Shown: piece after piece, positions 574-39,896 of the stretch
How positions within the stretch are numbered: position 1 is the first letter of the stretch
Layout: each line of letters starts with the position of its first letter
Source: Diplonema japonicum
Lineage: Eukaryota > Protista > Euglenozoa: Diplonemea
Direction of reading: 5' to 3'
DNA: 64,000 bases
Assembly (NCBI GenBank): GCA_964019335.1
Contig: OZ025740.1
Location: forward strand, 310,001 to 374,000
Made by a program: the position numbers and the translations under genes
The notes under the pieces: generated by a model
Database searches by the model: none
Seen by the model: the letters and a program-made list of their open reading frames with translations, nothing else
Told to the model about the DNA's origin: nothing

Positions 574-1764
574 TTAATTACTGTATACCACACATGGTCC
601 CGCTGGTATGCGAAGCTTTAAGAGGCTAAAATTGTCAGTACCTCTTCTTAAAACTATGGTTTCTAGTTTGTCGCACCCATTCAGGAAGCGACAAGCAACA
701 GAAAAAAGTTTGGCCATCGAACTCAAGTCGATGGTTTCTAGCTTTTTGCACCCTGACAAGAAGTGAGAACCAATAGAATAAAGATTGGTCATCGCATTCA
801 AGTCGATGGTTTCTAGGTTTTCGCACCCTGACAAGAAGTAATGACCAATAGAATAAAGTTTGGTCATTGAACTCAAGTCGATGTTTTCTAGTTTGTCGCA
901 CCCTGACAAGAAGAAAGAACCAATAGAATAAAGATTAGTCATCGCATTCAAGTCGATGGTTTCTAGATTTTTGCACCTTGACAAGAAGCTATGACCAATG
1001 GAATAAATATTGGTCATTGAGCTCAAGTCGATGGTTTTTAGTTCTGTGCAACATGACAAGAAGTCATCACCAATGGAAGAAAGATTGGTCAGCGCATTCA
1101 AGTCGATGGTTACTAGTTTGTCGCACCATGACAAGAAGTCATCACCAACGGAAGAAAGATCGGTCATCGCATTCACGGAGATGGTTTCAAGTTTTCTGCA
1201 TTTTGTCAAAAACTTACCACCAATGGTGGAAACATTGGGGAGGATGAGATCAACAGACGTCAGGTGGTCGCACTCTTCAAGAAACTTATTGTCTATTCTT
1301 GTAACACAGCCTGTGGAGTCGGTGACAATGAGGAACCGAAGTCCAGAAGGAAGGTCACTGCTGCTCATGGACAAGACTTCGACAGCTGGAGAGTACCCCA
1401 CCTCCACCACCAGAACCAGCTCAGGGTCAGCTGACACAAGACCCTCAAGCTCAGAAACCACTTCTGAGTTCTTGTCCTTCAGCTCTTCCAGACGGACTGT
1501 TCTCCTCTTGTTCACCTCCACATGGACCACGGAGCCCTCCACAAACCCAAGTGAATGAACCTCTTCACCACCATTCCTGTCCAGGACCTCTCCCTCCCAA
1601 ACCAGTTTGAACTTGCCTTCGAGTAAACTAGCAGCACACCCAGCCTTCTTGTACAGGCTCCCCACCGTCTCCTTCCCTGACACTTCCACATCGTGAGTCC
1701 CGCCTCCCGTCTTCACGAACACTGTCATATCGTTCACCCCTTCATCTGATCTCTTCCCATTCAT
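574..1764 (-). CDS. Ubiquitin-like domain + BspA-type LRR protein, copy 1 (9 LRR units)
   Basis: ORF 574..1851. Likely start MNGKRS at 1764, matching the paralog starts. N-terminal UBL-like pattern (MTVFVKT..HDVEVSGKETVGSL..KLVWEGEVLD..GSVVHV) followed by 25-aa repeats IGxxFLxxCxxLETIDLxxMTNLxS. Confidence 0.88.
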   Translation of the reverse strand: MNGKRSDEGVNDMTVFVKTGGGTHDVEVSGKETVGSLYKKAGCAASLLEGKFKLVWEGEVLDRNGGEEVHSLGFVEGSVVHVEVNKRRTVRLEELKDKNSEVVSELEGLVSADPELVLVVEVGYSPAVEVLSMSSSDLPSGLRFLIVTDSTGCVTRIDNKFLEECDHLTSVDLILPNVSTIGGKFLTKCRKLETISVNAMTDLSSVGDDFLSWCDKLVTIDLNALTNLSSIGDDFLSCCTELKTIDLSSMTNIYSIGHSFLSRCKNLETIDLNAMTNLYSIGSFFLSGCDKLENIDLSSMTKLYSIGHYFLSGCENLETIDLNAMTNLYSIGSHFLSGCKKLETIDLSSMAKLFSVACRFLNGCDKLETIVLRRGTDNFSLLKLRIPAGPCVVYSN

Positions 1765-2346
1765 GTTCTTTTTCTTTTCGTTCTCCCCCCCCCCCCCCCA
1801 AGCCCTTTTTTTTGCTTTGGTTTTTAGTTTCCCTGTGCTTGTCTTTTGCACTGCAGCCGAGTAGCTTCTCCTACTAAAAAATAAATGGGTGTTGGAAAGT
1901 TCTTTTTTTCGGGGGGGGATCGGGAATAGATAAGGCTGCTCACAAACTGCTTTTGTAAATGTCTTCTTTTTTTTTCCCCCCCTCTTTTTATGGCACTCTT
2001 CTTATCCTTACACTAATCTCGACAATTGACCACATGTCATGCCCTCCATTGCATTTCCCATAAGGGCAAATGGAGGAAACATAAAAGATGAAAGCGTAGA
2101 AAGACTTTCTTTTGTACAAAATATATCTTTTTTTTTTTTTTTTTATTTCTGTGTTCTTCCTCCCGGTGGGCACCTTAGCTACTGCTAAAATGTCAGTGCC
2201 TCCTTTTTTAAAATGAGGCATTTTTCCTCTTTTTTTTTTACCCAAACCTCCACCTTTTAATGGTTTTAAAACAAAGGGGCGACGTGTGACATCAGGCCAT
2301 CTGATTTTCATTTAGCTATTTTCTTTTTTTTTTTTTTTCTTTTTTC

Positions 2347-3459
2347 TTAATTACCGTATACTACACATGGTCCCGCTGGTATGCGAAGCTTTAAGAGGCT
2401 AAAATTATCGGTGCCTCTTCTTAAAACTATGGTTTCTAGTTTGTCGCACCCATTCAGGAAGTGAGAACCAATAGAAAAAAGTTTGGCCATCGAACTCAAG
2501 TCGATGGTTTCTAGTTTTTCGCACCCTGACAAGAAGTCATGACCAATAGAATAAAGACTGCTCATCGCATTCAAGTCGATGGTTTCTAGGTTTTCGCACT
2601 TTTCCAAGAAGTGAGAACCAATAGAATAAAGTTTGGTCATTGAACTCAAGTCGATGGTTGCTAGATTTTTGCACTCTGACAAGAAGAAAGAACCAATGGA
2701 ATAAAGATTGGTCATCGAGCACAAGTTGGTGGTTTTTAGTTCTGTGCACCTAAACAAGAAGGAAGAACCAATGGAAGAAAGATTGGTCATCGAACTCAAG
2801 TCGATGGTTTCTAGTTTGTCGCACCATGACAAGAAGTCATCACCAACGGAAGAAAGATCGGTCATCGCATTCACGGAGATGGTTTCAAGTTTTCTGCATT
2901 TTGTTAAAAACTTACCACCAATGGTGGAAACATTGGGGAGGATGAGATCAACAGACGTCAGGTGGTCGCATTTCTGAAGAAAGTTTTCGTTTATTCTTGT
3001 AACACAGCCTGTGGAGTCGGTGACAACGAGGAACCGAAGTCCAGAAGGAAGGTCACTGCTGCTCATGGACAAGACTTCGACAGCTGGAGAGTACCCCACC
3101 TCCACCACCAGAACCAGCTCAGGGTCAGCTGACACAAGACCCTCAAGCTCAGAAACCACTTCTGAGTTCTTGTCCTTCAGCTCTTCCAGACGGACTGTTC
3201 TCCTATTCACCTCCACATGGACCACGGAGCCCTCCACGAGCCCAAGTTCTTGAATCTCTTCACCACCGTTCCTGTCCAGGACCTCTCCCTCCCAAATCAG
3301 TTTGAACCTCCCTTCGAGTAAACCAGCAGCACACCCCGCCTTCTTGTACAGGCTCCCCACCGTCTCCTTCCCTGACACTTCCACATCGTGAGCCTCGCCT
3401 CCCGTCTTCACGAACACTGTCATATCGTTCACCCCTTCATCTGATCTCTTCCCATTCAT
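2347..3459 (-). CDS. UBL + BspA-type LRR protein, copy 2 (8 LRR units)
   Basis: Intact 370-aa ORF, tandem paralog of copy 1 with the same C-terminal cap (LRRGTDNFSLLKLRIPAGPCVVY). Confidence 0.9.
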   Translation of the reverse strand: MNGKRSDEGVNDMTVFVKTGGEAHDVEVSGKETVGSLYKKAGCAAGLLEGRFKLIWEGEVLDRNGGEEIQELGLVEGSVVHVEVNRRTVRLEELKDKNSEVVSELEGLVSADPELVLVVEVGYSPAVEVLSMSSSDLPSGLRFLVVTDSTGCVTRINENFLQKCDHLTSVDLILPNVSTIGGKFLTKCRKLETISVNAMTDLSSVGDDFLSWCDKLETIDLSSMTNLSSIGSSFLFRCTELKTTNLCSMTNLYSIGSFFLSECKNLATIDLSSMTKLYSIGSHFLEKCENLETIDLNAMSSLYSIGHDFLSGCEKLETIDLSSMAKLFSIGSHFLNGCDKLETIVLRRGTDNFSLLKLRIPAGPCVVYGN

Positions 3460-3535
3460 GTTCTTTTATCCTTGTTCTTTCCCCCCCCCCCCCCCCACAC
3501 CCTTTTTGCTTTCTTTATTTCCCCTGTGTGTGTGC

Positions 3536-3569
<34 letters not shown>

Positions 3570-4217
3570 CTGCAGGGGTGCAACATAAAAGAGAAAAAAG
3601 GGAAAAGAAAAGAACATAAAAATAAAAAGATGAAGGAGGCTGTGTGTTGGTGCCCCACTACTTCATTACATGGGGCGGTGCATCTCGAAAGAAAAGAATC
3701 AATCTTTTACGCCGCGGTCAACCACCACAGTCGGCTCCAAATGTTCCCGCCTTTAGGTGGGGGTGGGGGAAACGAGCAAGAAAATGACGGGGGAGTTGAA
3801 GAAAAAAAAGAGAGAAGCGTTCCCATTTGCCATGCATACACGAAGGCTGCTCAGCAGACAAATGTCACTTGTAGGTGTTTGTTTTTAGGTGAAACAAGCA
3901 CCTACTATGGGCAAGATCAACCAGGCTACTTGTCACTTTAACCGCCGATGGTTTACCGAGGTACCCCATATGAGATATGTGACAAAACCCATGAGGTGCC
4001 AATGCGCCCCTTATCGCGGAGAAAAAAAAAAAGAAGAAAAAAGAGGAAGAAGAGTGAGGGATATAACAAAACCCCCACCTGACAAATGTATCACAAGAGG
4101 GAGGAAGGTATTAAAAAAAATAAATAAAAATAAAAAAAGAGGAGAGGGTGGGGCGATTTAATTCTGTTTTTTTTTCTTTTTGTTTTTCTTCCTTTTTTTT
4201 ATTTTCTTTTCTTTCTA

Positions 4218-4248
<31 letters not shown>

Positions 4249-4371
4249 CCAGAGAGAAAAAAAGGAGAAAAAACAAGAATCTATCTATAGAAAGATCCAC
4301 ACCCACCCTCCCCAAAGAAAAAGACTGGAAAAAAAAAAAAGAAAGAATGGGCCGAAGGAACGAGGGTCCTT

Positions 4372-4414
<43 letters not shown>

Positions 4415-4492
4415 CCCTGTTCTTTTTCTTTTTTTTTTTCCATGTCTGTAGAAATAAAATAAATAAATGCCCGAGCCGCAAGAAAAAAAAAA

Positions 4493-4680
4493 GTTGGGTC
4501 TCTTAAGGGAAGTGGGTTAGAGGTTTCGCACTGACTGCGATTTACGGCAAACAATCTTGCCTGTGAAACTCTTTCATTTTTCGGATAATCTTCGGGGGAA
4601 CGAAGACAGGTAACGCAAAGTGGCCTGGTGAAGCTCCTTCAAACCAGTCCGAAAAACGGCAGTCGTTTCTTTCCGTAAAC
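4493..4680 (+). ncRNA. Candidate structured RNA or cis-element, copy 1 (unclassified)
   Basis: Multiple complementary segments: TTTACGG/CCGTAAA, GACTGC/GCAGTC, TTGCCTGT/ACAGGTAA, TTTTTCGGA/TCCGAAAAA, TCTTCG/CGAAGA, CTGGT/ACCAG. A second copy lies at 9325-9491. Confidence 0.4.
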
Positions 4681-4945
4681 AAAAAAAAAAGAAAAAGAAA
4701 AAAAAGGGGGGAAGTGAGAGTTTGGCTTTTTTTTAGCATTTTGTTTGTGCATCACACGAATAAAAAAAAGAAATATTGCATGCTAATCACTTTTTTTTTT
4801 TTTTTTTTTTCTTTTTTAGCAAATAACAATGGGACCCACCAAAAATAGGGGTAGGTTGCGCCGCTTGCAGAAGATCGCCGTTGTAAAGTTTTTTGAAGTA
4901 GCAAGCAAGCCTGGCACCCACTTTTTTTTTTTTATCCCAAGAAAA

Positions 4946-12233: not shown

Positions 12234-13169
12234 TTACTCACTGTATACTATATTTACCCAAGCTGGTATCTCAGCCTTCAAGCTGTTAAAACTGTCAATA
12301 CCTCTTCTAAAAACGATGGTTTCTAGTTTTTCGCATCTTTTAAAGTTACATAAACCAATGGAAGAGAGATTGGCCATCAAGCTCAAGTCGATGATTTCCA
12401 GTTTTTTGCACCCAGACAAGAAGCAAGAACCAAACGAAGAAAGAGTGACCATGGAACTCAAGTCGATAGTTTCTAGTTTTTTGCACTCTGACAAGAAGTA
12501 AGAACCAATAGAATAAAAATAGGTCATTGCATTCAAGTCGATGGTTTCTAGATTTATGCACCTAAACAAGAAGTAATCACTAATGGAGGTAACATTGGTC
12601 ATCGAATTCAAATTGATGGTTTCTAGATTACTGCACCCTGATAGAAATTCATCGCCAATGGTAGAAACACTGGGGAGGATGAGATCAACAGACGTCAGGT
12701 GTCACATTTCCGAAGAAACGAATATTTTATTCTTGTAACACAGCCTGTGGAGTCGGTGACGACAAGGAACCGAAGTCCAGAAGGAAGGTCACTGCTGCTC
12801 ATGGACAAGACTTCGACAGCTGGAGAGTCCCCCACCTCCACCACCAGAACCAGCTCAGGGTCAGCTGACACAAGACCCTCAAGCTCAGAAACCACTTCTG
12901 AGTTCTTGTCCTTCAGCTCTTCCAGACGGACTGTTCTCCTCTTGTTCACCTCCACATGGACCACGGAGCCCTCCACGAGCCCAAGTGAATGAACCTCTTC
13001 ACCACTGTTCCTGTCCAGGACCTCTCCCTCCCAAACCAGTTTGAACTTGCCTTCGAGTAAACCAGCAGCACACCCAGCCTTCTTGTACAGGCTCCCCACC
13101 GTCTCCTTCCGACACTTCCACATCGTGAACCCCGCCTCCTGTCTTCACGAACACTGTCATATCGTTCAT
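12234..13169 (-). pseudogene. UBL + LRR copy 3, two frameshifts (6 LRR units)
   Basis: 2-nt deletion near 13110 and 1-nt deletion near 12700 relative to paralogs. Pieces lie in ORFs 12999..13202, 12695..13123 and 12234..12611. Confidence 0.85.
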
Positions 13170-14859: not shown

Positions 14860-15010
14860 TTCTTTTCTTTTTTATCTCCTTCGTCCTACTCATCTCTATT
14901 CAATTTCAACAATTCCACTATTTTTTTTCTCATCCAGTTGCCTGGGTACTCATCTCTTTCCACAAGCTTTGCTGGTTCTTTAGCACTTTACACTTTCTTC
15001 TTCTTCTTCT

Positions 15011-15040
<30 letters not shown>

Positions 15041-15046
<6 letters not shown>

Positions 15047-16003
15047 ACTGAATGCTATACTTACCCTATCTGGTTTCATAACCTCTAAGATGCTAAAACT
15101 GTTACTGCCTCTTCTCAAAACGATGGTTTCTAGTTTTTCGCACCTTAACAAGAAGGAAGAACCAATGGAATAAAGATTGGTCATCGAGCTCAAGTCGATG
15201 GTTTCTAGTTTTTTGCACCCAGACAAGAAGCCAGCACCAATGGAATAAATATTGGTCATCTCATTCAAGTCAATGGTTTCTAGATTTCTGCACCCTGACA
15301 AGAAACCAGCACCAATAGAATAAATATTGGTCATCCCATTCAAGTTGATGGTTCTTAGATTTGCACACCTTGACAAGAAGTAATGACCAATGGAATAAAG
15401 ATTGGTCATTGAGCTCAAGTCGATGGTTTCTATTTTAGTGCACCCTGATAGAAATTCATCACCAATGGTAGAAACATTGGGGAGGATGAGATCAACAGAT
15501 GTCAGGTAATAGCTATCAAGAAGAAACAAAGATTTTATTCTTGTAACACAGCCTGTGGAGTCGGTGACAACAAGGAACCGAAGTCCAGAAGGAAGGTCAC
15601 TGCTGCTCATGGACAAGACTTCGACAGCTGGAGAGTCCCCCACCTCCACCACCAGAACCAGCTCAGGGTCAGCTGACACAAGACCCTCAAGCTCAGAAAC
15701 CACTTCTGAGTTCTTGTCCTTCAGCTCTTCCAGACGGACTGTTCTCCTCTTGTTCACCTCCACATGGACCACGGAGCCCTCCACGAGCCCAAGTGAATGA
15801 ACCTCTTCACCACCGTTCCTGTCCAGGACCTCTCCCTCCCAAACCAGTTTGAACCTGCCTTCGAGTAAACCAGCAGCACACCCAGCCTTCTTGTACAGGC
15901 TCCCCACCGTCTCCTTCCCCGACACTTCCACATCGTGAGCCTCGCCTCCCGTCTTCACGAACACTGTCATATCGTTCACCCCTTCATCTGATCCCCCGTT
16001 CAT
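15041..16003 (-). CDS. UBL + BspA-type LRR protein, copy 4 (6 LRR units)
   Basis: Intact 320-aa ORF with the same N-terminus and a distinct C-terminal cap. Confidence 0.9.
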
Positions 16004-16199: not shown

Positions 16200-16692
16200 C
16201 TAAAAAGAATGGTTAGAATGCTTTGATTGCAACACTAGGTGGCGTTAAAGGTCGCGAGAAACAGGATGGTACACTCAGGGATGGGATCTCGGGATTCTGA
16301 ATGAATCATAAGTGCCTCAGCCGCCTTTTGACTGGCATGCTACTTCGGCAGGTTAGTTGGTTGTTGTAGAGTTGTTGCGGAGGGGCAGGTCCCCGGTGTC
16401 TTCGAGATATTGGATTGCCTTTCGTGGGTTCTCCACAAGGATGTGTCTCAGCGTGTCGAAGTGTTTGTCCCTGCTTGCTTTGGATGACGGGCAGTCTAGG
16501 AAGAGATGTTGGAGGGTTCTCTTCGTGTTGAAGTAGTTGCAGGGCATTTCAGGAGGAGGTGTTCGAGCGTTCTCTCTGTTGCAGGTCTCCTTTTGCAAGT
16601 GCGTTGCTTGAAGGCAGAGAGCGCTCTCTGTTGCGGGTCCAACAGCCAAATCGGCGCACTTTGTTTTCCCACATAGGTGCTTCTACATTTGA
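16200..16692 (-). mobile_element. 3' fragment of a non-LTR retrotransposon (Ingi/I-clade-like zinc-knuckle tail); left boundary approximate
   Basis: Peptides TCKRRPATERTLEHLLLKCPA and CNYFNTKRTLQHLFLDCP in overlapping frames resemble the CCHC tails of LINE ORF2. Abrupt junction with the LRR sequence near 16693. Confidence 0.6.
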
Positions 16693-17457
16693 AGAATGAC
16701 CAATGGAACAAAGATTGGTCATCGCATTCAAGTTGATGGGTTCTAGGTATCTGCACCCAGCCAAGAAGTAATCACCAATGGAAAAAAGATTGGTCATCGC
16801 ATTCAAGTTGATGGTTTCTAGTTTGCCGCACTCACACAAGAAGTAATTACCAATGGAAGAAACATTGGTCATCGAATTCAAGTTGATGGTTTTTAGGCTA
16901 CAACACCCCTCTAAAAAGGATTTTTCAATAGTGGAAACATTGGGGAGGATGAGATCAACAGACGTCAGGTGGTGGCTATCTTTAAGAAACCTACTGCCTA
17001 TACTTGTAACACAGCCTGTGGAGTCGGTGACAACGAGGAACCGAAGTCCAGAAGGAAGGTCCTTCCTGTCCATGGACAAGACTTCGACAGCTGGAGAGTA
17101 CCCCACCTCCACCACCAGAACCAGCTCAGGGTCAGCTGACACAAGACCCTCAAGCTCAGAAACCACTTCTGAGCTCTTCAGCTCCTCCAGCTGAACTGTT
17201 TTCCTATTCACCTCCACATGGACCACGGAGCCCTCCACGAGCCCAAGTGAATGAACCTCTTCACCACCGTTCCTGTCCAGGACCTCTCCCTCCCAAACCA
17301 GTTTGAACTTGCCTTCGAGTAAACCAGCAGCACACCCAGCCTTCTTGTACAGGCTCCCCACCGTCTCCTTCCCCAACACTTCCACATCGTGAACCCCGCC
17401 TCCAGTCTTCACGAACACTGTCATATCGTTCACCCCTTCATCTGATCCCCCGTTCAT
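16693..17457 (-). pseudogene. UBL + LRR copy 5, truncated in its 5th LRR by the retroelement fragment
   Basis: Homology ends at ...MTNLCSIGH. The ORF reads into foreign sequence to 16549 and the C-terminal cap is absent. Confidence 0.8.
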
Positions 17458-17938: not shown

Positions 17939-18910
17939 CTAACCTTCGCATAAGACGAGCACCTTGCTGTCCCCTGTCACGAAGTACCCGTGGGTGGGGG
18001 TGGTGGTGATCCCTACGACGCTTGCCATGTCGATATCTCCAAGGCGCTCCAAGGCTTCCGGTTTCCTAATGGAGTACACCACCACACCATCGGGCTTACT
18101 AGCATAGAGCACAGTGCCAGAGAGGGAAATAGTCGAAGAAGGCAGGTAGTGGGTGGCCAGCGCGTCACCAGCGTGAGAGAAGATGGACAAGATGTCCCGC
18201 CCAAGAATAACAAAATAGGTCTCGGAGATAGAAATATCACCGCATGGGGTAGAAATGCGCATGCCAAAAGGGATCACCTCGGTGGGACCTTGCATTTTGT
18301 ACAGCATTGCGCTCCACCCAGAGGACACTATTAAGTGTGGATACTTCACCACCACGTGGAGGGACGTGTCGTGTGTGATGGACCCCACGTGCTTGAAGCT
18401 GCCGTGGTCGGTGGTGGGGAGAAAGACGTGCACTCCATAGGACCCAAGTGCAATGTACAAGTAATCGCCGTAAGTGGCCATTGCGAACTGTGGGGCATCA
18501 GGGAAGCCTTCTAAGGGGAAGATTCTGGCTTCTTGTTCGTTGAACAGCAATAGGCCTCCATTTGCGTTCGGCCTGCTCACCGCCACCCACTCCCTTCCTG
18601 TGGCGTGATAAGGTATCGCACTGTGAGCGTTTGCCACTTCAGCCTCGAAACGCACTCCATAGCTGACGTCGAGTCTCACACCGTCTGCCCTTCTCCGGAC
18701 GTGTAGCTCTTCCCCATCAGTGAGCGAGAGGTCCGACACCTTCTCTTCCTCTCGATCCAGAACCACATCCTGCCACAGCAAGTCATATAGGTCGCTGCTT
18801 AAATGCGCCTTCTTCTCCACTTCTCTTCTTAAGTCTCCCACTACCCAGCTGTGCTCGACTTCGATGCCCACTGACTCGGGGCCCACCTTGACAATCACTG
18901 AGATGGGCAT
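17939..18910 (-). CDS. Ubiquitin-like domain + putative beta-propeller (LVIVD-like) protein
   Basis: N-terminal UBL-like pattern (ISVIVKVG..IEVEHSWVVGDLR..LLWQDVVLD..LTDGEELHV). Beta-rich blades such as GDYLYIALGSYGVHVF and GTVLYASKPDGVVVYSI. Confidence 0.7.
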   Translation of the reverse strand: MPISVIVKVGPESVGIEVEHSWVVGDLRREVEKKAHLSSDLYDLLWQDVVLDREEEKVSDLSLTDGEELHVRRRADGVRLDVSYGVRFEAEVANAHSAIPYHATGREWVAVSRPNANGGLLLFNEQEARIFPLEGFPDAPQFAMATYGDYLYIALGSYGVHVFLPTTDHGSFKHVGSITHDTSLHVVVKYPHLIVSSGWSAMLYKMQGPTEVIPFGMRISTPCGDISISETYFVILGRDILSIFSHAGDALATHYLPSSTISLSGTVLYASKPDGVVVYSIRKPEALERLGDIDMASVVGITTTPTHGYFVTGDSKVLVLCEG

Positions 18911-19562: not shown

Positions 19563-20124
19563 TCATGCGCCAGGGCATCTCCCAAGGCACAGTGTGTTGC
19601 ACCACTTGGCGTGGCCCCGCTGGGAGACCATGAACTGCCGCTGCCATGCAGCTGCGTCGTGGTGCAGTGCATCAACGGCCGCTGCGATGTGTTGCGGCGT
19701 GGCAGGGTGCGGGAGGGTGTCGTGCGGGGGAAGCCTGTCGTGGGACCTGTCCTTGCGCAAAACGAGAAAAGACGTGAATCGCATCCACTGCCCAGGCGCC
19801 AGACGGCCTGCCACCCCTACCACAGCCCGTAAGGGCAACGAGTACAAAACCCCAGGCACAAACCGCAACGCATGCCCAGCAACCGTCTCAGCCCCGTCCG
19901 CAAAGTTGCGAAAAGACAACACAGTCCCACACTTGACACAGGAATCGACTTCATACAAAGATGCTCCATCTTGCAAGGAGTGGCACTGAGGACATGAATA
20001 CATTTTTGCAGACACCACAGAGACCTTCACACACGCCGACCGCCTGCGGTGCACACCAGCTACAAAATTCTGCAGCAAGATAGCAGCTGCCTGGAACACC
20101 ATGCCCGCCCCTTCAGCGACAACG
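19563..20124 (-). CDS. Partial gene running out of the assembly gap; IQ-like motif and CxxC...CxxC zinc ribbon
   Basis: AAILLQNFVAGVHRRR, CPQC...CVKC. GC-rich and open up to the N gap. Confidence 0.45.
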
Positions 20125-20324
20125 NNNNNNNNNNNNNNNNNNNNNNNNNNNNNNNNNNNNNNNNNNNNNNNNNNNNNNNNNNNNNNNNNNNNNNNNNNNN
20201 NNNNNNNNNNNNNNNNNNNNNNNNNNNNNNNNNNNNNNNNNNNNNNNNNNNNNNNNNNNNNNNNNNNNNNNNNNNNNNNNNNNNNNNNNNNNNNNNNNNN
20301 NNNNNNNNNNNNNNNNNNNNNNNN
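20125..20324. other. Assembly gap (200 N)
   Basis: Run of N. Confidence 1.
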
Positions 20325-22936: not shown

Positions 22937-24472
22937 CTATTCGCTCTCGTCCAAAGGAGGCAACATTGTTGCATTCTCACTGCACGTGACAGCGCCCCTA
23001 CAGTCCGGGCTCCTTCGGTTGGCAACCGGGTCCTCCCGCCACCGGGCCATCACACGTTCCTCGTCTTCTGCACTACAAGGCAGCTTCGGGTACCAAAGGC
23101 CAAGCCCGTCACACATAACGTTCAGGAGCACCTCCCCCGCCCCAAGCAGACCCTCCCCGTACATGTGAAGCCCATCAGGCGAATCGCTGGGGTACTGCTT
23201 TTGTATAGGGTACACGTTGAAGACAGGGAGGTTCAGACAGGACGCCACCTGCAGCATGATCTCCCGGTACACAGTAAGCTTGCCAACAGGGTTGCATGTC
23301 CTTATCCATGAGGCCTTGTCATGGTGGATGTAAGGTAGCATGTACAGGGCCATCGTGGTGTTCGGGCCTGCGAGGTTCCTGTACCTCGAGACGTGATCCT
23401 TGAGCCCAGTGTAGTATTGGTCTGTTCCACAGAAATGGGCACCCACGTCCCACGAGCCGACGGAGTAAAGGATGAACTTCGCTTTTGTTTTCAAGAAGCT
23501 CGAGACGTCGACAGGCGTTGTGGCCTTGTTGCCCCTCGTCATGGTCCCGAACTCGGTCATGGTGGACGGTGTCCAGATGTGTGCAGTGTGGTCAGGCCCC
23601 GCGATCTTGTCCTCCCTTATCTTCGACCGCCAGAACTTCACAATGAAGCTGTCGTGGTAGCTCCTCGACAGGGTGTCCCCGATGGACAGGAATGGGACGC
23701 TCTTCACACATAACGCACCTGAGGTGTCGTTGTACTGCTTGATGTCGCAGTTGTCGGGCACCCAGTGGGTGTCCACTAACTTCCCGGGGAAGACCTGTTC
23801 CGCTGTCTGGCATGCATTCTTCACACCACGTGGTTCAGAGGCATCCTGCACAACAGGGGGTGGTGGTGGGACTGGGTTCGTTGGTACCAACTGGACCACC
23901 TGTCGGACTGGCTGGTACATTGCGACTGCCTTCGCGCAAGCAACCTTGACGTCACCATCGTACCTCCAGAACTCTTCATGCCCTCCAACACAGATGGATT
24001 CTTGAATAGCGATAACAGTTGGCGTGCCTATCACCTGTGGGATGAACCCGATGCCTGAGCATTGTGCTGCGTATTGCAGCATCTCGTTGAGAGTAGGGTC
24101 TGTGTAGTGTCCCTTCAGGCCTATTCTCACGTCGTTCTTCAGTAGATGCCTGTAGTCGTCGATCTTTCCCATGATTGTGAGGTACTTGGCCTCCTTGTCC
24201 ATGCTTATCCCGAAGGCCCGCTCGGGGATCTCGATGGTCGACCACATCACGACAGGGCTGTTTGCGCTTGTCTTCCTGTCCCACAGAGTGTCCCGCACCC
24301 CGAGGGGTAAGTACCCAACGCCCCTTGGGTCCCCGTCTTGGCAGATGCTCTCCCGTTTAATAGCAACCAGCTGTTGCTGCTGCTGCACCACCTCAGGCGT
24401 CATCCACTTGCAGGTCGCCACTGTCAGGCCGTACAAGAACACCCCAGCAACCATGATCTTTATGAGTTCCAT
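22937..24472 (-). CDS. PC-esterase/TBL-like (SGNH-type) type II membrane protein, paralog 1
   Basis: N-terminal hydrophobic anchor from MELIKIM, then WVPDNCDI, FLSIGDTLSR and SPDGLHMY (DxxH). Confidence 0.8.
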   Translation of the reverse strand: MELIKIMVAGVFLYGLTVATCKWMTPEVVQQQQQLVAIKRESICQDGDPRGVGYLPLGVRDTLWDRKTSANSPVVMWSTIEIPERAFGISMDKEAKYLTIMGKIDDYRHLLKNDVRIGLKGHYTDPTLNEMLQYAAQCSGIGFIPQVIGTPTVIAIQESICVGGHEEFWRYDGDVKVACAKAVAMYQPVRQVVQLVPTNPVPPPPPVVQDASEPRGVKNACQTAEQVFPGKLVDTHWVPDNCDIKQYNDTSGALCVKSVPFLSIGDTLSRSYHDSFIVKFWRSKIREDKIAGPDHTAHIWTPSTMTEFGTMTRGNKATTPVDVSSFLKTKAKFILYSVGSWDVGAHFCGTDQYYTGLKDHVSRYRNLAGPNTTMALYMLPYIHHDKASWIRTCNPVGKLTVYREIMLQVASCLNLPVFNVYPIQKQYPSDSPDGLHMYGEGLLGAGEVLLNVMCDGLGLWYPKLPCSAEDEERVMARWREDPVANRRSPDCRGAVTCSENATMLPPLDESE

Positions 24473-24516
24473 TTTTTTTTTTTTTTTTTTTTTTTCCACC
24501 TCCCTCCCTCCTACTT

Positions 24517-24558
<42 letters not shown>

Positions 24559-24629
24559 CTTGAGGGATGTTTAATACTAATAAGAAACCCAGGGGGAGGG
24601 AGGTGGGGGACGAAAATATTCGAAACATC

Positions 24630-26695
24630 TCAGCCCCGAGGAAGCGGGGGCAGGACCGTGGAGTTATCTATGCAGACCCTAGTGGTTGGGAGGTCACATC
24701 CCGGGCTGAATCGGTTCGCAACAGGGTGGGCCCGCCAGCGTGCCTTGGCTCGGTCCTCGTCCTCAGGGGAGCAGGGAAGGTTGGGATGGATGAGCTCAAG
24801 CCCATCACACATGACATTGAGCAGCACCTCATCTGCCGCCAGTAGCGCACCATGGTACACATGCAGACCGTCAGAGAACTTTTCTGACTGTTTCTGCAAC
24901 TCATATATACTGAAGACGCCAAGCCCTGTGCATGATGCAAGCTGGAGGGTCATTTCTCTGAAGACCTCCAGCTTCTGTACAGGGTTGCAAATTCTCACCC
25001 ACTTGGCATTCCCCTCAAAGTGCACGAAAGGTAACGTCTCCAGCACCAGCCTTGTGTCCTCACCCAGAAGCCTTTTGTACTTCGCAATCTTCTGCTTGAT
25101 GACACTGTAGTACTGGTCCGTCCCACAGAAATGTGAACCCGAGTCCCACGCCGTGACAGAGTACAGTGCGAGCTTCGCTGTGTTCTTCATGAAACCCGAG
25201 ACGTCAACTGAAGGTGCGCCCTTTTTGCTAAGCGTTTTTGTTGAGAAGCGTTCAGCCGACGATGGGTTCCACACGTGGGTGGTGTACTGCGATGCGTTCT
25301 TGTCGCCCATCTCTGCAAACATCTTCGTGAAGCTGTCGGAGAAGAACCTGGACAGCGAGTCCCCCATCGCGAGGAAGGGGGTGCGCTTCACGCACTGCAC
25401 TGCGCGCTTGTCATCGTACTTCTCAATATCGCAGTTCTTCGGCACCCAATGCCGCCCCTGCACTTCCCCAGGGTATATGTCCTCGAGTCCCTTGCACTTT
25501 CTTCGTGGCTTGGCATCGCTAGCATTCACCGCTTCCCCCTGGTCCATTGCATTTGAAGGCTGTCGTTCTGTCGCGTTCCTGTCAGCCTTCGGCACTCGTT
25601 CCTCGTTGTGGGTTGCAAACCTGCCGCCGCCTTCTCCCATTTGTGTGGCGTTCCTGACCTGTGGGTTCTGTTCCTTATTTTTGTCCTCCATCTCGTGTAC
25701 TGTCTTCTCCTTCATGTCCTCAGTGACTTGCGGTTTTTGTTCTTTGTTCTTGTTCTCGTCTTTGTGCACCGCCTTCTCTTGCACGTCCTCAGCGACTTGC
25801 GGTTTTTGTTCCTTCTTGTCCTCCCCCTCGTGCACTGTCTTCTCTTTCATGTCCTCAGTGACTTGCGGTTTTTGTTCCTTCTTGTCCTCCCCCTCGTGCA
25901 CTGCCTTCTCCTTCATATCCTCAGTGACTTGTTCTTTGTTCGTATTCTTCACTTCTTGCATCGTCTTCTCCGCATCCGTAGTGATCTGCGGCTTCTGTGA
26001 GTTCGCATGTGGGTTTTCCTGTTCATGCCCCGGTCGGGGTTTGTCTTCGTGTGCCTTGGGCTTGATATCCATCGGCAGTGTGTTGGGTTGCTTTCCCAGA
26101 GGTGGTGCATGTCGTGGCTCGTTTATCTGAGGGTCGGTGATGTCTAGTAATTCAGGTTTGCGCTCCTGGAACAGCGCCAAAGCTGTTGTGCACGCTTCCT
26201 GCAGACTGCCGTTGTACTCCCAGAAGGCCTCGTTGCCCCCTCCGCAGATCGACCGCCGTATTGCTAGCACAGTGGGCCTGTTCCGGGTCTGCGGTATGAA
26301 CCCCGCCCCAGCACACCTTGCAGCATGGACCAACACTTCGTTCAACTTTGGGTTTGCAGCGTTCCCCTTCAGCCCTATTTTCGCCCGCTCAGGTAGGAGG
26401 TTCCTGTACCCCTCTATCCGCCCCAGTACGGAGTGAAATAGTTCCTTCCGCTGCCAGCTGCTGTACTCTCTATCGTGCAACTCGATAGCTGCCCACCGCA
26501 CTTTGCTTATCACGTCCTCTGTCTCCTTATCCCACATGGAGTCCCGCACGCCTAAGGGGAGGTACCCTGCACCAACAGGGTTCCCATCTGTGCATATCGT
26601 GCTCTGCGGCTTCTTCTTCACCTTGATCTCTGTGGGCACCATCATCGTGATAGCCGACACCATGACAAGCAGGAAAACGATCTGTTTGATGTCCA

Positions 26696-26696
<1 letters not shown>
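24630..26696 (-). CDS. PC-esterase/TBL-like type II membrane protein, paralog 2, with a repetitive stem
   Basis: Anchor from MDIKQIV, then WVPKNCDI, FLAMGDSLSR and SDGLHVY. About 5 copies of EQKPQVTEDMKEKTVHEGEDKK. Confidence 0.82.
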
Positions 26697-26727
<31 letters not shown>

Positions 26728-26915
26728 CCGTGGCTGGGGTGAAGTGGTAGGTAAGCTAACAAAAAAAAGGGGGGGGGGCATCTTTTACAAAAGAAAAAAA
26801 GTAGCTTTTCAAGTCAGTAAAAAAAAAGGGGGGGTAAGGAATCGTATCAACTAGTTAAAACCAGTTTGTGCAGAAATAACGAGAGAAAATGAAAAAAGAA
26901 GAAAAAGGATAACAT

Positions 26916-28292
26916 CTAGTCCTTCTTTTTCTTCTTTTTCTTAGCAAAGTGGGTGTTCACGTGTGCATGCATTGCAGACTCCGATGTGCCTACATCGAAG
27001 GTGCTTCCGCACATAGGGCAGGCGTGGGACACGAGTTTAGCTTTATCATGTGTAGGGTTTGCCTTGTCTTGTTTTTCGTGCTGTTCTTCAGGCTGGGGCT
27101 CCTTTGCAGCATGGCACACAGAACACGTACTTGCATCTTCCATGTTGATGAGGGTGCAGTTGGGACACGCCCAGCAGCCAAACACACTGAGAGCCTTGGC
27201 AATCACACCTTCTTGCTTACCTTTTGCGGTTTGTTTAAGCGCAGTATGAAATGCCTCAATGAGGGCGGGCTTTGGGACGGTGGACAACCGGGGATCCTTG
27301 ACAGCACCATGAACAGCCTTTATGAAACCCTCCTCAGTAGAGGAGAGCTTGTCAGCACAAGCGACCCGCTTTGCAATGATCCCTCCTGCATCAGTTGGGT
27401 CGGTGAACAGGCCCATGCGCACCCACATGATGAAGCGGGTCACGTCGGCGACAGAATACTTCAGCTTGTTTGTCAACTGGAAGAAGAGGTCTGCCTTGTG
27501 CATTGTGTCTAGCTTTCCTGGATCGGTCCCGGTACTGCTGAGCCGTTGCTTGCACTCTGTGATCATCTTGCTCCTCCCTTCTCTGTTTGTCACATCTATC
27601 GCTACCTTCTCTTGTGGTGCCGTGTTGCGTATTTCATACGACTCTGCTGAGAAGCTGCTCACCTGCCCAGCGCCTCGTGTGACCTTCTGTCTTTTCGGAG
27701 CGGGGGGTGATGGAAGGCGTGGTTTTTCTTGCTCTTCTTCTTTTTTGGTTTTCTTGCGTTTCTTCTCTTTCTTCTCTTTCTTCTCTTTTTTTTCTGTCGA
27801 CGAAACCGCCTTCTTCTTCGTCACGCACTCTGCACAGTATAGCCCTGCAGGGGGTGGGTCTTCTTGCAGTGTCGGGGTACTGCAGTAGGTGTGCTGCCGG
27901 TTGTTGCAAATGAAGCATTTTAAAAGCAAGGCATCGTTGTCGGCAGCACCGCAGGCAAAGCACACAACCCAGTCATCGTCGGAGGACGGGTAAGCTCCAC
28001 CGCCCCCACCTTCAGTCGAGTCGTCCGAGTCAGAAGAGTCCTCGAAGGTTTGTTTCTTGATGGTTTTAACCTTTCCTACCTGTTCCCCTGTTGCCACCAC
28101 CACTTTTGCTACTTTGTTGAACTCCGTTCGGCATAATGGGCACTGGCTGCTTCTTTCGGACCACTGGCATATGCATTCGTGGCAAAATGTATGGCCGCAC
28201 GCTTTCTTTACTCGACCCCTCACATAGCTCACCACCCCTTGCACTTTGCTCTCTTCTTGGCACACTGCACATGTTATCTTTCCATCAGACAT
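26916..28292 (-). CDS. RING + PHD + RanBP2-type ZnF + UBZ-like protein (probable nuclear E3 ligase)
   Basis: CAVC..CGHTFCHECI..CPLC; CFAC..CFIC..HTYC..CAEC; WACPNCTLIN..CSVC; CPMC..HVNTH; Lys-rich segments. Confidence 0.88.
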   Translation of the reverse strand: MSDGKITCAVCQEESKVQGVVSYVRGRVKKACGHTFCHECICQWSERSSQCPLCRTEFNKVAKVVVATGEQVGKVKTIKKQTFEDSSDSDDSTEGGGGGAYPSSDDDWVVCFACGAADNDALLLKCFICNNRQHTYCSTPTLQEDPPPAGLYCAECVTKKKAVSSTEKKEKKEKKEKKRKKTKKEEEQEKPRLPSPPAPKRQKVTRGAGQVSSFSAESYEIRNTAPQEKVAIDVTNREGRSKMITECKQRLSSTGTDPGKLDTMHKADLFFQLTNKLKYSVADVTRFIMWVRMGLFTDPTDAGGIIAKRVACADKLSSTEEGFIKAVHGAVKDPRLSTVPKPALIEAFHTALKQTAKGKQEGVIAKALSVFGCWACPNCTLINMEDASTCSVCHAAKEPQPEEQHEKQDKANPTHDKAKLVSHACPMCGSTFDVGTSESAMHAHVNTHFAKKKKKKKD

Positions 28293-35501: not shown

Positions 35502-35544
<43 letters not shown>

Positions 35545-35909
35545 ATTGTACTTTTCTTGCAAAGGCCTCTTTTTAATATTTTTTTCAAAGCAGGTCTCCA
35601 AACCCCCTGACATTTTTTTAATTTTTTTTTTTTTTTTTTTTTTTTTTACATAGTCACAACAAGGTAGTATGAGCCTTGCCTCACATCCCACCCAAACCTA
35701 GGACCTCTTTTTTTGAACCTTTGAAACCAAAAGTACCAAAAAAATGCAAGCCCCAGCCTAAATTTGGGCCTTTGTGACACAAAAAACACAAAGAAATTTT
35801 TTGGTCCCAAGAGTCCCCTGAGTCCCCTCCAGACCCCTGAAAATTTCAGGGGACTCCTGTCCTGTCCCTTGGAGTCCCCTGAGTCCCTCAAGGGTCTGGA
35901 CCAACACTG
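34109..35909. mobile_element. Non-autonomous DNA transposon, TIR CAGTGTTGGTC, 7-bp TSD ACCATAC
   Basis: TIRs at 34109-34119 and 35899-35909. ACCATAC at 34102-34108 and 35910-35916. GGGAC/GTCCC subterminal motifs. Confidence 0.9.
34748..35050. repeat. About 49-bp minisatellite (about 6 units), also present inside the 32531 MITE
   Basis: Unit GTTGTAGCTTCTTCTGCATTCTGCATCGTGTCCTTAATCACCA(C/T)GGCC. Homolog at 32755-32895. Confidence 0.85.
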
Positions 35910-37393
35910 ACCATACTCAGGGCTTACATCTCTTAGACAACACATCTCTTTGCTGTGAGATTTGAGCCTTGAGAATGAGGTGAACCCTGTGACAGTGACA
36001 ACCCTGGCATTGGCTCAGAGATTGGACTGCACTTTTCTTTCGCTGGCTTGGGGATCTTTGCAGCTGTCTTCTTCTTCAGCTTTTCTGCCAATTTCGCTTT
36101 CACACCAGGGCTGTGTCTGCACTCCCAGTGCTCCTTCAACTTCCCTGATCTTGACTGGATGGTCACTGCACGTTCAACACACTCAGGAGCAAGACACGGC
36201 CGCTTCTCCATGACCATGCCATCCTTTTCCTTTGTCACTATCTTGCCAAAGTAGTACTCCTTAGAAGGGTCGATACCATGTGCATCACCAACAGACCATG
36301 TCTTGTTGTCCCAGATGGATGTCTTGGGTGTTGTAGAACATTCCTTAGCAGGTGCTTCCAACATGACTAGTGCGTTTCCAGACGAGGTGTGTGTTGCCTT
36401 AGGTTGTAAGGCTTCAGCCTTCAGAACTTTGATGGTGTCTTGTAGCTCTGTGATTCGTGCTTTTGCAAGACCAAGTTTTGCCATGGTATCACAAAGCTGG
36501 TATGGGTTGTGGTTTATTGTCTTTATGGCCTCAAGATGATAAACCTGTTCATCTTCCACATTTGGGGGGAAGTGGTGCAGGTACCCAGGATCCTGTGCAT
36601 ACTCACACAAAACAGCAACACAGCAAGATGCCAACAATCTTCCCATCCCAGACAGAAACCATGTCGTCCTGTGTTGGTTTCTTGTGTCGCTCCCCTCTGG
36701 TGCCCCAGAAGTGGGCTCTGAAGGTTGTGCCTTCTCCTTTCCCCTTCATGAAATGCAACATTTCATCATGGCTGAGGCCATTCTTGTTGCCAGTCTGGGT
36801 AAGGTCTTGTGTTTTCACATATTTCTGTGAGAACACAGTTTTGTATTGATTTCCTCCTCTTCTTCCTCCTCCTCTAGTTCAGATTTACCTGAACATAGCC
36901 CATGCCTGCCATGTTGAGTTGGCAGTCATGTTTCTGGTGCTTATCCTCTGCACCCCTTTCACCTTCTTCGCTACTTGGCACAGCTTCAGTGTCAGGAACA
37001 AAGAACAGAAGCAGAACAAGTACCACAATCATTTTATCTGTTAATTGTAAAAAATAATACAAAGAAAATGATAAACAAAGGCTAAATACTGTATAAATAC
37101 ACATCGACTCTGACAGTAATGCAACACAATGTGAAGCAACATGATGTGTTTTCTGTTCACATTTCATTCACTTGACACAAAAAATGTGAAGTAACACAAC
37201 ACAACACACCAAAGTGTCGTTTTATATTGTACCATACAGTTTATAAAATATTTTCTGTGTCGAAATTTCTAAAAAAAACTCCAGAAGGGCTGCCCTTTCA
37301 TAACTGAAAGTTAGATTTTTTCTTCTTCTTTTTTTTTTTTTTTTTTACATAATTTGTGTTGTACTTTTGTCATGATAAGGAATACATGCCAGG

Positions 37394-37399
<6 letters not shown>

Positions 37400-37430
<31 letters not shown>

Positions 37431-37504
37431 ATTGTACTTTTCTTGCAAGCCTCTTTTTAATATTATTTTTCAAAGCTGGTCCCCAAACCCTAAGACATTT
37501 TTTT

Positions 37505-37539
<35 letters not shown>

Positions 37540-38070
37540 TAGTCACAACAAAGGTAGTATGAGCCTTGCCTAAGATCCCACCCAAACCTAGGACCTCTTT
37601 TTTTGAACTTTTGAAACCAAAAGTACCAAAAAAATGCAAGCCCCAGCCTAAATTTGGGTCTTTGTGACACAAAAAACACAAAGAAATTTTTTAGTCCCAA
37701 GAGTCCCCTGAGTCCCCTCCAGACCCCTGAGTCCCTTGAGCCAGTCCAAATACAACATTTGATGTGGAAAGCAGAAACAACAGCTTGGCTTAGGTGTGCA
37801 AAAAAATGTGAGAAGACAAGAAAAAAAGAAGGGGAAAAAAAAAAAAGGTAAACACATCATGTATGTCAAAAAAAAGCAAGGATTTTTTTCTCTTTTTTTT
37901 TTCCCCATTTTTTTTTTTTTTTTTCCAAAAAAGTTGCAAAACTATCAAAAATAATGACAGTGTTGGGGAGAGTCCTGTGAGTCCTGTCAAGTCCCGTCCC
38001 GTGGAGTCCCATGAGTCCCATCCAGGCCTGTATTCCGTTTTAGGGGATGGGATGGGACTGACCAACACTG
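37400..38070. mobile_element. Rearranged fragments of the CAGTGTTGGTC element
   Basis: 37400-37740 is a direct copy of 35505-35840. 37745-38070 is an inverted copy of 34109-34452 ending in GACCAACACTG. No matching TSD. Confidence 0.8.
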
Positions 38071-38936
38071 CCCCAATAAAGTACAGAGCACTGATCACAA
38101 ACTTGCAAGAAACATGAGGAAAAAAATAAAGTTACTTTTTTTGATGTTTCTAGCCAAAACAAGGGAAAATAAATAAAGTCTACTTTATTTATGGGGTCCC
38201 CAGCCAAAAACACTAGGGGGGGGGGGCAAAAAGATAAATAAAAAAAGAAAGAAAGAACGAGAAAGAAAAGGGAACCAAGAGGCATGTGAGCAGCCAACCA
38301 CCTTGTCTATTTTAGTTTTCAAGATGTTTACCCTCTCCCCCCCCAAAAAAAATGAGTGAAAAAGAAAAGGGAAAAATAAGTGTAAAATAAGTTATATTCC
38401 GTGTACACTGAGTAGATGAAACCAACAACGCAAAACTGTACTCTGCCGTCAACCTTTATTCTTTTTTGTTCGACTCTCTGTTTTCGTATGCAGTACTTAT
38501 CCTTCTTCACCCCTTTTTATTTTACTTTTTCGCTTTTTACTACCCACTTGCAAAATCATTTCAGCTGCCATCAAACGGTAGCAACACCCTAAAGAGCCGC
38601 GTTCAAAAGGAGGTACAAGCCATGTCAAGTACTCGTCTTTCAGGAAGATGCCCAAAAGTTGGATTAGGTGGCTCCAGTACTCTGCACTGGCAAAATTGAA
38701 AAAAAAAAAAAAAAAACCATTTTACCCATTACCATGTGACCCCCTGCCTCCCCAAATTTTCAACACATTTGAACGATTGGTACAATCAGGTCTTTATTTT
38801 CGGGAGGATATTCTTCTTTTTCTTCATCATTTCACTTCTGAAGTCTTCACGACAAGCACACGAAAAATAACAACACACAAGCAAAAAAAGGTTTTTGTGG
38901 GGGAAAAGGAGGGGAAAGGAACGAAAAGAAAAGAAC

Positions 38937-39896
38937 ATGAATGGGAAGAGATCAGATGAAGGGGTGAACGATATGACAGTGTTCGTGAAGACAGGAGGCG
39001 AGGCTCACGATGTGGAAGTGTCGGGGAAGGAGACGGTGGGGAGCCTGTACAAGAAGGCGGGGTGTGCTGCTGGTTTACTCGAAGGCAGGTTCAAACTGGT
39101 TTGGGAGGGAGAGGTCCTGGACAGGAACAGTGGTGAAGAGGTTCATTCACTTGGGCTCGTGGAGGGCTCCGTGGTCCATGTGGAGGTGAACAAGAGGAGA
39201 ACAGTCCGTCTGGAAGAGCTGAAGGACAAGAACTCAGAAGTGGTTTCTGAGCTTGAGGGTCTTGTGTCAGCTGACCCTGAGCTTGTTCTGGTGGTGGAGG
39301 TGGGGTACTCTCCAGCTGTCGAAGTCTTGTCCATGAGCAGCAGTGACCTTCCTTCTGGACTTCGGTTCCTTGTTGTCACCGACTCCACAGGCTGTGTTAC
39401 AAGAATAAAATCTTCGTTTCTTCTTGATAGCTATTACCTGACGTCTGTTGATCTCATCCTCCCCAATGTTTCTACCATTGGTGATCAATTTTTATCACTG
39501 TGTGAAAATCTTGAAACCATCGACTTGAATGGGATGACCAATCTTTATTCCATTGGTCATCGCTTCTTGTCAGGGTGTGCAAATCTAAGAACCATCAACT
39601 TGAATGCGATGACCAATCTTTCTTCCATTGGTGATGACTTCTTGTTAGAGTGCGAAAAGTTAGAAACCATCGACTTGAGTTCCATGATCACTCTTTCTTC
39701 CTTTGGTTCTTCCTTCTTGTCAGGGTGCGAAAAATTAAAAATCGTCGACTTGAGCTCGATGACCAATCTCTCTTCTGTTAGTTTTTGCTACTTTGCAGGC
39801 TGCCACAGACTAGAAACCCTCATTCTGAGAAGAAGTATTGACAAGTTTAACAAGGCTGAGATGCCAGCTAGGATAAGTGTAGTATACAATGAGTAA
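38937..39896 (+). CDS. UBL + BspA-type LRR protein, copy 6 (6 LRR units)
   Basis: ATG at 38937 (MNGKRS). Intact ORF and first gene of the plus-strand cluster. Confidence 0.9.
   Translation: MNGKRSDEGVNDMTVFVKTGGEAHDVEVSGKETVGSLYKKAGCAAGLLEGRFKLVWEGEVLDRNSGEEVHSLGLVEGSVVHVEVNKRRTVRLEELKDKNSEVVSELEGLVSADPELVLVVEVGYSPAVEVLSMSSSDLPSGLRFLVVTDSTGCVTRIKSSFLLDSYYLTSVDLILPNVSTIGDQFLSLCENLETIDLNGMTNLYSIGHRFLSGCANLRTINLNAMTNLSSIGDDFLLECEKLETIDLSSMITLSSFGSSFLSGCEKLKIVDLSSMTNLSSVSFCYFAGCHRLETLILRRSIDKFNKAEMPARISVVYNE

Follow-up and report, generated by a model that had tools for sequence, protein, structure and literature searches.

A ubiquitin-like leucine-rich-repeat gene family with hypervariable repeat positions in Diplonema japonicum

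Among described protein families, the closest in sequence to the genes reported here are the BspA-like (TpLRR) proteins, which form a 911-member family, TvBspA, in Trichomonas vaginalis (PMC2843621). The window analyzed here, a stretch of 64,000 nucleotides from the diplonemid Diplonema japonicum (contig OZ025740.1, positions 310,001 to 374,000; G000:C93:310001-374000 in the genome assembly of 62.5 Mb and 132 contigs), carries six copies (c1 to c6; Table 1) of a gene that joins a ubiquitin-like (UBL) head to an array of leucine-rich repeats (LRRs), hereafter UBL-LRR. The repeat type IGxxAFxxCxxL is common to UBL-LRR, to TvBspA and to bacterial surface LRR proteins (4gt6, 4fs7, PcpA 4cp6), and TvBspA is likewise a huge lineage-specific protist expansion with variable repeat number and, mostly, no signal peptide. 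Unlike TvBspA, which lacks the UBL head, UBL-LRR shows a strict 25-residue period, near-identical DNA units and hypervariability focused on five positions; its products are predicted to be intracellular, in contrast to the surface adhesin TvBspA, and its host is a free-living euglenozoan. In the literature searched we found no report of a UBL head with a capping linker on TvBspA, and full-text searches returned no description of a BspA-ubiquitin fusion or of BspA in diplonemids; LRR or ubiquitin-like genes go unmentioned in the D. japonicum YPF1604 genome note (PMC13598402), in a preprint on symbiont-bearing diplonemids and in the D. papillatum genome paper.

In evolutionary mode the closest analog, which is not homologous, is the fungal HNWD family with het-d and het-e (PMC1805685, PMC2873952, PMC4986451), where repeats evolve in concert within and between loci, repeat number varies, pseudogenes belong to the family, and four to five surface codons per repeat are positively selected. 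HNWD proteins combine a WD40 propeller with HET/NACHT domains at ten loci, whereas UBL-LRR combines an LRR solenoid with a UBL head at hundreds of loci. An integral N-terminal beta-grasp domain without a conjugation Gly-Gly is shared with Rad23, Dsk2 and Ddi1; unlike these, UBL-LRR proteins have no ubiquitin-associated (UBA) domain, their hydrophobic patch appears to be changed, and their C-terminal part is a variable LRR array and not a ubiquitin-chain binder. Finally, lamprey variable lymphocyte receptors (VLRs), the LRRs of plant NLRs and F-box-LRR adaptors use the LRR scaffold as an evolvable binding surface, as UBL-LRR would, and also form large families in which solvent-exposed positions of the repeats are under positive selection. 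In UBL-LRR, unlike VLRs and NLRs, the concave LxxLxL sheet is conserved and the variable residues flank the FLxxC core; unlike plant NLRs and F-box-LRR proteins, UBL-LRR is without NB-ARC, TIR and F-box domains. On balance, we favor the reading that UBL-LRR is a young, large family of intracellular binders, in which the LRR array would provide a combinatorial binding surface and the UBL head a common coupling module.

Variability and selection in the repeat array

The family sample of 76 fetched loci yielded 57 distinct coding sequences, which encode 287-882 aa and together contain 500 modules, with between 2 and 28 canonical ones in each gene. Amino-acid entropy within the module is highest at positions 17, 18, 21, 22 and 24 (1.9-3.0 bits), while L1, I4, L6, F19, L20 and C23 are fixed in 93-99% of modules, and E2, T3 and D/N5 on the concave strand are likewise conserved. 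The original prediction, made from the window alone, had located the variation in two di-residues; these correspond to positions 17, 18, 21 and 22, and position 24, which follows the cysteine and is equally variable, had been missed.

The proportion of nonsynonymous differences (pN) at the five positions is 1.9-3.2 times the global proportion of synonymous differences (pS), compared with 0.04-0.5 at framework positions. In 184 disjoint module pairs, which were chosen by framework similarity and for which pN and pS were taken on the same codons, the variable codons gave a pN of 0.424 vs a pS of 0.216 (ratio 1.97, Fisher 1e-20), and the framework a pN/pS of 0.51. For the tandem pair c1/c2, pS is ~0.07 throughout and pN at the variable codons reaches 0.356 (~5-fold). 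Strong positive selection acts at five outward-facing positions per turn. Diversifying selection at the residues named in advance is thereby borne out, as the ratios found there are about 2 in the module pairs and about 5 in c1/c2, and not at or below 1.

The variable-site alphabet is polar and aromatic (D, H, N, S, Y, G, R, C, F, E), and D, H, N, S, Y, G, R and C are residue types enriched in protein-binding sites. A total of 273 different five-residue signatures occur among 341 unique modules, with little mutual information between positions, and 67 di-residues occupy positions 17-18. Regular repeats that each carry a hypervariable di-residue are also what a modular nucleic-acid reader of the TALE or PPR type would show, reading one base per repeat through the di-residue, and the SV40-like KRKKRKV tails of long-array members, which resemble nuclear localization signals (NLSs), would fit such a role. 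A four-letter code, however, needs far fewer combinations than the 67 di-residues and 273 signatures of low mutual information, and the structural matches of the fold, an LRR_5 solenoid, include no known DNA-binding proteins, so that we give this explanation hardly any credence.

The codons of the di-residue are themselves patterned: the third base is T in 96% of cases at position 17 and C in 92% at position 18, and the first base takes all four states. The resulting N-R-T (17) and N-R-C (18) codons superficially resemble the NNY outcome of adenine mutagenesis, and a site-directed process, either similar to diversity-generating retroelements or another templated hypermutation, could in principle create variation at fixed nucleotides. 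Against this stand the restriction of the second codon base to A or G and the absence of a template repeat or dedicated reverse transcriptase beside the genes in the window; furthermore, the variation is germline, is spread over hundreds of loci and is mixed with ordinary framework substitutions, and constancy of the third base is expected anyway at a synonymous divergence (dS) of ~0.1-0.2. Directed mutagenesis is therefore very improbable as the source of the variation.

Domain architecture and the ubiquitin-like head

PF13306 (LRR_5, BspA-type) was detected at 42.8-87 bits in all five translatable window copies (cut-off 27.7), with c1 at 87 and c2 at 77.7 bits. PF00240 (ubiquitin family) scored above its 25.4-bit cut-off in c2 (31.4), c6 (27.0) and c4 (26.5) and just under it in c5 (23.6) and c1 (22.7). 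Pfam revealed no UBA or other partner domain at E<=0.1 in the window copies and no NACHT, NB-ARC, TIR or F-box domain in any of them. The UBL ends in ..HVEVNKRRTV and runs straight into the linker; no Gly-Gly follows it in the window copies, so that the head does not qualify as a conjugatable modifier. Likewise, no hydrophobic N-terminus or segment of transmembrane (TM) grade was found in these copies, where the top Kyte-Doolittle 19-residue window reaches 1.45, in agreement with the expectation of neither signal peptide, TM segment nor C-terminal Gly-Gly. The four C-terminal caps described earlier do exist as four variants; they are, however, variants of one homologous cap (LET[IL][IV][LF]RR..) and not four kinds.

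From an alignment of 29 family members, AlphaFold2 (AF2) gave a model of c4 with a mean predicted local distance difference test score (pLDDT) of 84. The model consists of the UBL (residues 11-83), a linker/N-cap (86-165), the LRR array (166-290) and the cap (291-320). Residues 11-83 (pLDDT 59-82) follow the beta-beta-alpha-beta-beta-3(10)-beta order of the beta-grasp fold predicted for the N-terminus, and superpose on ubiquitin, NEDD8, ISG15 and the Dsk2 UBL with root-mean-square deviations of 1.2-1.7 Å and target TM-scores of 0.78-0.87; by sequence, the head resembles solved ubiquitin-like chains only marginally (E 0.07-0.7). The LRR part of the model (pLDDT 86-97) was matched by Foldseek to the LRR_5 structures 4gt6, 4fs7 and 4cp6 (E 2e-4 to 1e-3), with low whole-chain TM-scores because the c4 model has two domains.

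In each modeled turn, positions 3-5 form a strand and positions 14-15 a short second one; the variable residues come after this second strand, alternating with the buried F19, L20 and C23. Since equivalent positions stack along the solenoid, the variable residues should, according to the model, form one continuous stripe on a face distinct from the conserved concave sheet. The comparison with VLRs and plant NLRs in the original prediction does not extend to this arrangement, because VLRs and plant NLRs use the concave beta-sheet and the variable residues of UBL-LRR lie off it.

With respect to the head, the original prediction had proposed that the UBL docks on ubiquitin receptors of the proteasome, in the manner of Rad23 and Dsk2, and that the LRR array delivers foreign proteins for degradation. 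An N-terminal integral UBL without Gly-Gly is indeed typical of such shuttle factors, the Dsk2 UBL ranks with the best matches in both sequence and fold, and the recognition surface is diversifying. By standard ubiquitin numbering on the head alignment, however, Ile44 alone is presumably kept conservatively, as Val, and the equivalents of Leu8, Val70 and Lys48 would be Gly, Glu and Glu; these changes in the Ile44 patch appear to argue mildly against recognition followed by degradation. Moreover, no UBA or other ubiquitin-binding domain accompanies the UBL according to Pfam, and the CaaX, TM and NLS-like ends of relatives (see below) imply fixed locations and not a soluble shuttle. We therefore regard a degradation shuttle as improbable; delivery to the proteasome would be one possibility among several for the coupling, and nothing in the present data appears to favor it.

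Exchange, decay and extent of the family

Head identity among the window copies is 89-99% over 145 aa (99% between c6 and c4), and the heads are thus as near-identical as first noticed. At the nucleotide level the copies are 93-100% identical in the head and 65-90% in the array. Head dS between window copies is only 0.03-0.09, and pooled pN/pS values are 0.50 for the UBL, 0.65 (up to 1.1) for the linker and 1.18 for the N-cap, which carries variable residues of its own. The near-identity of the head is largely due to the youth or homogenization of the copies and not to strong constraint, and the view of the head as conserved by strong selection has to be given up.

Copies exchange repeat units as well as gene segments. 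A 75-bp period is detected by Tandem Repeats Finder at 77-87% matches, and the module counts given earlier for c1 to c6 (9, 8, 6, 6, 4+ and 6) are recovered if the N-cap module is included. Between c4 and c6, head pS is 0.026 vs 0.19 in the LRR framework. Among c3, c4 and c6, the odd copy out switches in blocks along the array (70 runs vs 93.9 +/- 5.2 expected, p<0.0002). For 178 of the 500 modules the nearest DNA neighbor lies in another gene at another ordinal position. With only 5-15 nt separating modules, this result is no more than suggestive; we relied on the runs test and the dS contrast in its place. All four mosaic strings cited in the original prediction are present in the copies named, and its claim that module histories depart from gene histories agrees with both of these results. 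The first module is identical between c1 and c2. In a test of the head modeled on the pairwise homoplasy index, the four-gamete condition is violated by 38% of informative site pairs, with no decay over distance (p 0.33), so that the test carries no information on tract length. The type of N-terminal leader still correlates with the C-terminal type, and subfamilies thus persist.

Near-identical repeats in variable number, exchange between them and a few selected codons constitute the same mode of evolution as in the fungal het-d/het-e (HNWD) genes (PMC1805685), and it could be argued that the UBL-LRR repeats discriminate between conspecific cells or genotypes and not pathogens. Such allorecognition would have to operate without NACHT/NB-ARC or a death-effector domain and through hundreds of loci, far more than the 10-member fungal family, in an organism for which cell fusion or sex is undocumented in the literature examined. 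We consider a self/non-self function of this kind distinctly unlikely.

The family gains and loses members and repeats via tandem duplication, repeat-number change, frameshifts and retroelement hits, as the birth-and-death process proposed earlier would have it: c3 and c5 are broken, and aberrant C-termini occur in 21 of 56 sampled genes. Compared with c4, c3 has lost 2 nt near 13110 and 1 nt near 12711, and these deletions leave three pieces over two frames. The open frame of c5 (to 16549) passes into unrelated sequence, and its array is lost at ~16693, cut there because the 3' end of a dispersed repeat (Table 1) occupies the site. This repeat has at least 40 copies in the genome (e.g. G000:C66:434708-434824 and C95:262939-263055) that are 80-96% identical and coincide at the 3' end but not at the 5' start, resembling the tail of a 5'-truncated non-LTR (long terminal repeat) retroelement; the open reading frame (ORF) within it ends ..DLPLRNNSTTTN. 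A 115-nt piece of the same repeat lies just 3' of many genes of the long-array (polybasic) class, and one of them, gene L051, reads into it.

Homology between copies falls to background ~85 nt upstream and ~90 nt downstream of the coding sequence, so that the unit common to the copies has about the size expected of a mature mRNA. An A-rich run follows every stop codon (flanks e.g. 15000-15040 and 39897-39990), and after it a conserved ..GTGCWAAAGAACCAGCAA.. segment is found in c3, c4 and c6. Retroposition was considered as the source of the dispersed copies and is not supported, as the A-run lies inside the 3' segment conserved in c3, c4 and c6, and target-site duplications did not turn up.

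Across the genome, 191 matches were obtained among 644 candidates. The family is young, very large and intronless, with at least 190 matching loci in D. japonicum. Among the young genes sampled, a short-array class with the cap has 4-8 modules and includes the window copies, and a long-array class has 6-27 modules and ends in LNLKRK(KRK)VGV, a tail that we take to resemble a monopartite NLS. A head-profile search of 1.84 billion representative proteins gave 61 matches, of which those spanning UBL and linker are UBL-LRR_5 proteins; the 20 matches that were looked up and P0001 are D. japonicum transcripts, and all 22 family relatives whose source was looked up in EukProt bear EP01064_Diplonema_japonicum accessions. 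Older transcribed members are 25-60% identical to the window copies. One of these, P0014, matches the genome at 100%; transcriptome and assembly therefore agree, and old members are expressed. Many older members have CaaX ends (CSIL, CVVS, CLLM, CCIA, CCIS, CCVM), and P0009, P0017 and P0020 have hydrophobic tail anchors. Given the CaaX, TM and NLS-like ends, the family probably serves several compartments; the cytosolic location proposed originally fits the window copies and does not extend to these relatives. A further LRR_5 gene array, at G000:C77:12000-150000, matches the LRR part of the query alone and probably carries other heads, and the head of P0068 is a coiled coil.

The LRR part of c1 matches many LRR_5 proteins in metagenomes. 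Two metagenomic proteins, P0071 and P0086, have a weak PF00240 head and are colinear with c4 from the first UBL residue. A search with the P0086 head identified at least 313 proteins, all on ENA contigs of 0.15-2.16 Mb (including P0184-P0302), whose heads are 62-92% identical to P0086, whose modules are again most variable at positions 17, 18, 21, 22 and 24, and whose tails end in the bipartite-NLS-like KRSRDESPEQSQKRQRHAQ. As P0086 is at best 33-38% identical to the D. japonicum genome, the ENA proteins come from another organism. Head-only similarity between the two organisms is weak (hhalign E 0.005 over 50 residues).

Several points weigh against the view of UBL-LRR as a family of selected binders. 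The selection figures stem from pairwise counting on recombining paralogs and not from a codon model on partitioned trees, and the case for a single stripe draws on periodicity and on modeled secondary structure, not on coordinates. Framework and head pN/pS values of 0.5-0.65, with the linker at ~1 among the window copies, are high for a constrained protein and suggest that many copies are drifting. No exact transcript of any window copy is present in the D. japonicum transcriptome set, and the best genomic copies of P0001 and P0004, transcripts of hypervariable subfamilies, are only 69% and 72% identical to them; these two may be chimeric Trinity contigs or copies lost with haplotig purging. 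Transcription is thus shown at the level of the family and is unproven for single young copies.

Taken together with the two broken copies out of six in the window, the aberrant ends in the sample and the retroelement tails adjoining many copies, the missing exact transcripts and the pN/pS values of 0.5-1.1 in framework and head could be expected of a largely non-functional, self-amplifying BspA-like family, in which recombination and retroelement activity spread and homogenize the gene, most copies are decaying, and the apparent selection is a by-product of comparing paralogous repeats. Relaxed constraint, however, cannot raise pN above pS, and the five positions have ratios of 2-5 compared with 0.04-0.2 at buried positions. 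Moreover, reading frames of up to 882 aa stay open, and the same positions are variable in the second organism. A non-functional family is an explanation that we consider unlikely.

Genomic setting and proposed role

The six paralogs starting at 574, 2347, 12234, 15041, 16693 and 38937 were all found, as ORFs and by tblastn, at the places originally predicted, where the breakage of c3 had gone unmentioned. A tblastn search of the window with c4 returned exactly these six copies and the UBL of one neighboring gene. The germline copies other than the broken c3 and c5 are complete ORFs, and flanking LRR cassette arrays of the lamprey VLR type were not seen in the window. The open frame of c1 extends upstream as far as a GTG at 1851. 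Genes in this region, including those of the family, are long intronless ORFs with A- or T-runs between them.

Table 1. Positions of the UBL-LRR copies and other features in the window.
Feature	Position	Strand	Description
c1	574-1764	-	Intact UBL-LRR gene, 396 aa; UBL, linker, N-cap, 8 modules and cap
c2	2347-3459	-	Intact UBL-LRR gene, 370 aa; tandem neighbor of c1
c3	12234-13169	-	Pseudogene; 6 modules and cap
c4	15041-16003	-	Intact UBL-LRR gene, 320 aa; copy used for the structure model
Dispersed-repeat 3' end	16340-16692	-	Cuts c5
c5	16693-17457	-	Truncated; head and 4+ modules kept
Neighbor gene with weak UBL head	17939-18910	-	323 aa
Assembly gap (N run)	20125-20324	.	200 N; outside all six family copies
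c6	38937-39896	+	Intact UBL-LRR gene, 319 aa; strand opposite to the other copies

The sole N run in the window lies between c5 and c6 and interrupts no ORF. The nearest ORF, 19563-20102(-), begins 23 nt from its left edge, and tblastn of the window detected no family homology touching the gap, although a further copy may lie hidden within it.

The neighbor gene next to c5 encodes a related UBL head with a weak match (PF00240 E 0.006) and a non-LRR tail, apparently mostly or entirely beta; a single-sequence AF2 model of the protein has a pLDDT of only 39, too low to identify the tail. An exact copy of the protein is found in the EukProt transcriptome set of D. japonicum, and the UBL head thus occurs on another scaffold as well. 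Ordinary genes are interspersed with the family copies: two ABC transporters, an FkbM-type methyltransferase and a RING-PHD protein. The last, a ubiquitin-system gene positioned between family copies (26916-28292, minus strand), combines RING, PHD and a RanBP2-type zinc finger with a C-terminal C2H2 zinc finger of the autophagy-receptor type (PF18112). Pfam recognizes neither of two adjacent paralogous ORFs on the minus strand, 22937-24628 (563 aa) and 24630-26762 (710 aa). Both have a hydrophobic stretch at the N-terminus and share conserved regions at either end, N- and C-terminal, and the longer contains a 66-bp tandem repeat (25681-25931) coding for a K/E-rich insert. Three paralogous GC-rich ORFs on the plus strand, 42459-44855, 46801-50418 and 52520-55189 (798, 1205 and 889 aa), are likewise without Pfam match and contain long antisense ORFs, with a strong GC skew at ~48-50 kb.

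For UBL-LRR as a family of intracellular binders, we propose the following mode of action. The protein would consist of an integral, non-conjugatable UBL, a helical linker capping the solenoid, and a BspA/TpLRR solenoid of 2 to 28 turns of 25 residues, in which the five outward residues of each turn would line up into one continuous hypervariable stripe along the solenoid. The array is read as a combinatorial ligand-binding surface because of the geometry of this stripe and its protein-binding residue alphabet, and proteins would be the most likely ligands. The UBL head would couple the bound ligand to a common partner that recognizes ubiquitin folds, and the C-termini of the subfamilies (plain cap, NLS-like basic tail, CaaX or TM anchor) would place binders in different compartments.

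More tentatively, UBL-LRR might be an unrecognized class of protist intracellular recognition receptors, independently expanded to hundreds of genes in at least two organisms. Viruses and endosymbionts, already named as targets in the original prediction, are purely conjectural ones. The LRR_5 stripe would then bind fast-evolving foreign or selfish partners, either viral, from a Holosporales-type endosymbiont of D. japonicum, or from transposons, and the UBL, in place of a NOD or F-box, would hand the complex to ubiquitin, proteasome or autophagy machinery at defined sites. We regard this extension as possible and, as a whole, rather doubtful.

The fusion to a UBL suggests a new way to wire a variable binder to the ubiquitin system. 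If the proposed function is true, UBL-LRR would be the first candidate for a recognition or immunity-like repertoire in Euglenozoa, and an independent case of the route taken by fungal NLRs, with near-identical repeats, exchange and few selected surface codons. The scaffold itself resembles a natural repeat-protein library, with a fixed core, five randomized positions per turn and any number of turns.

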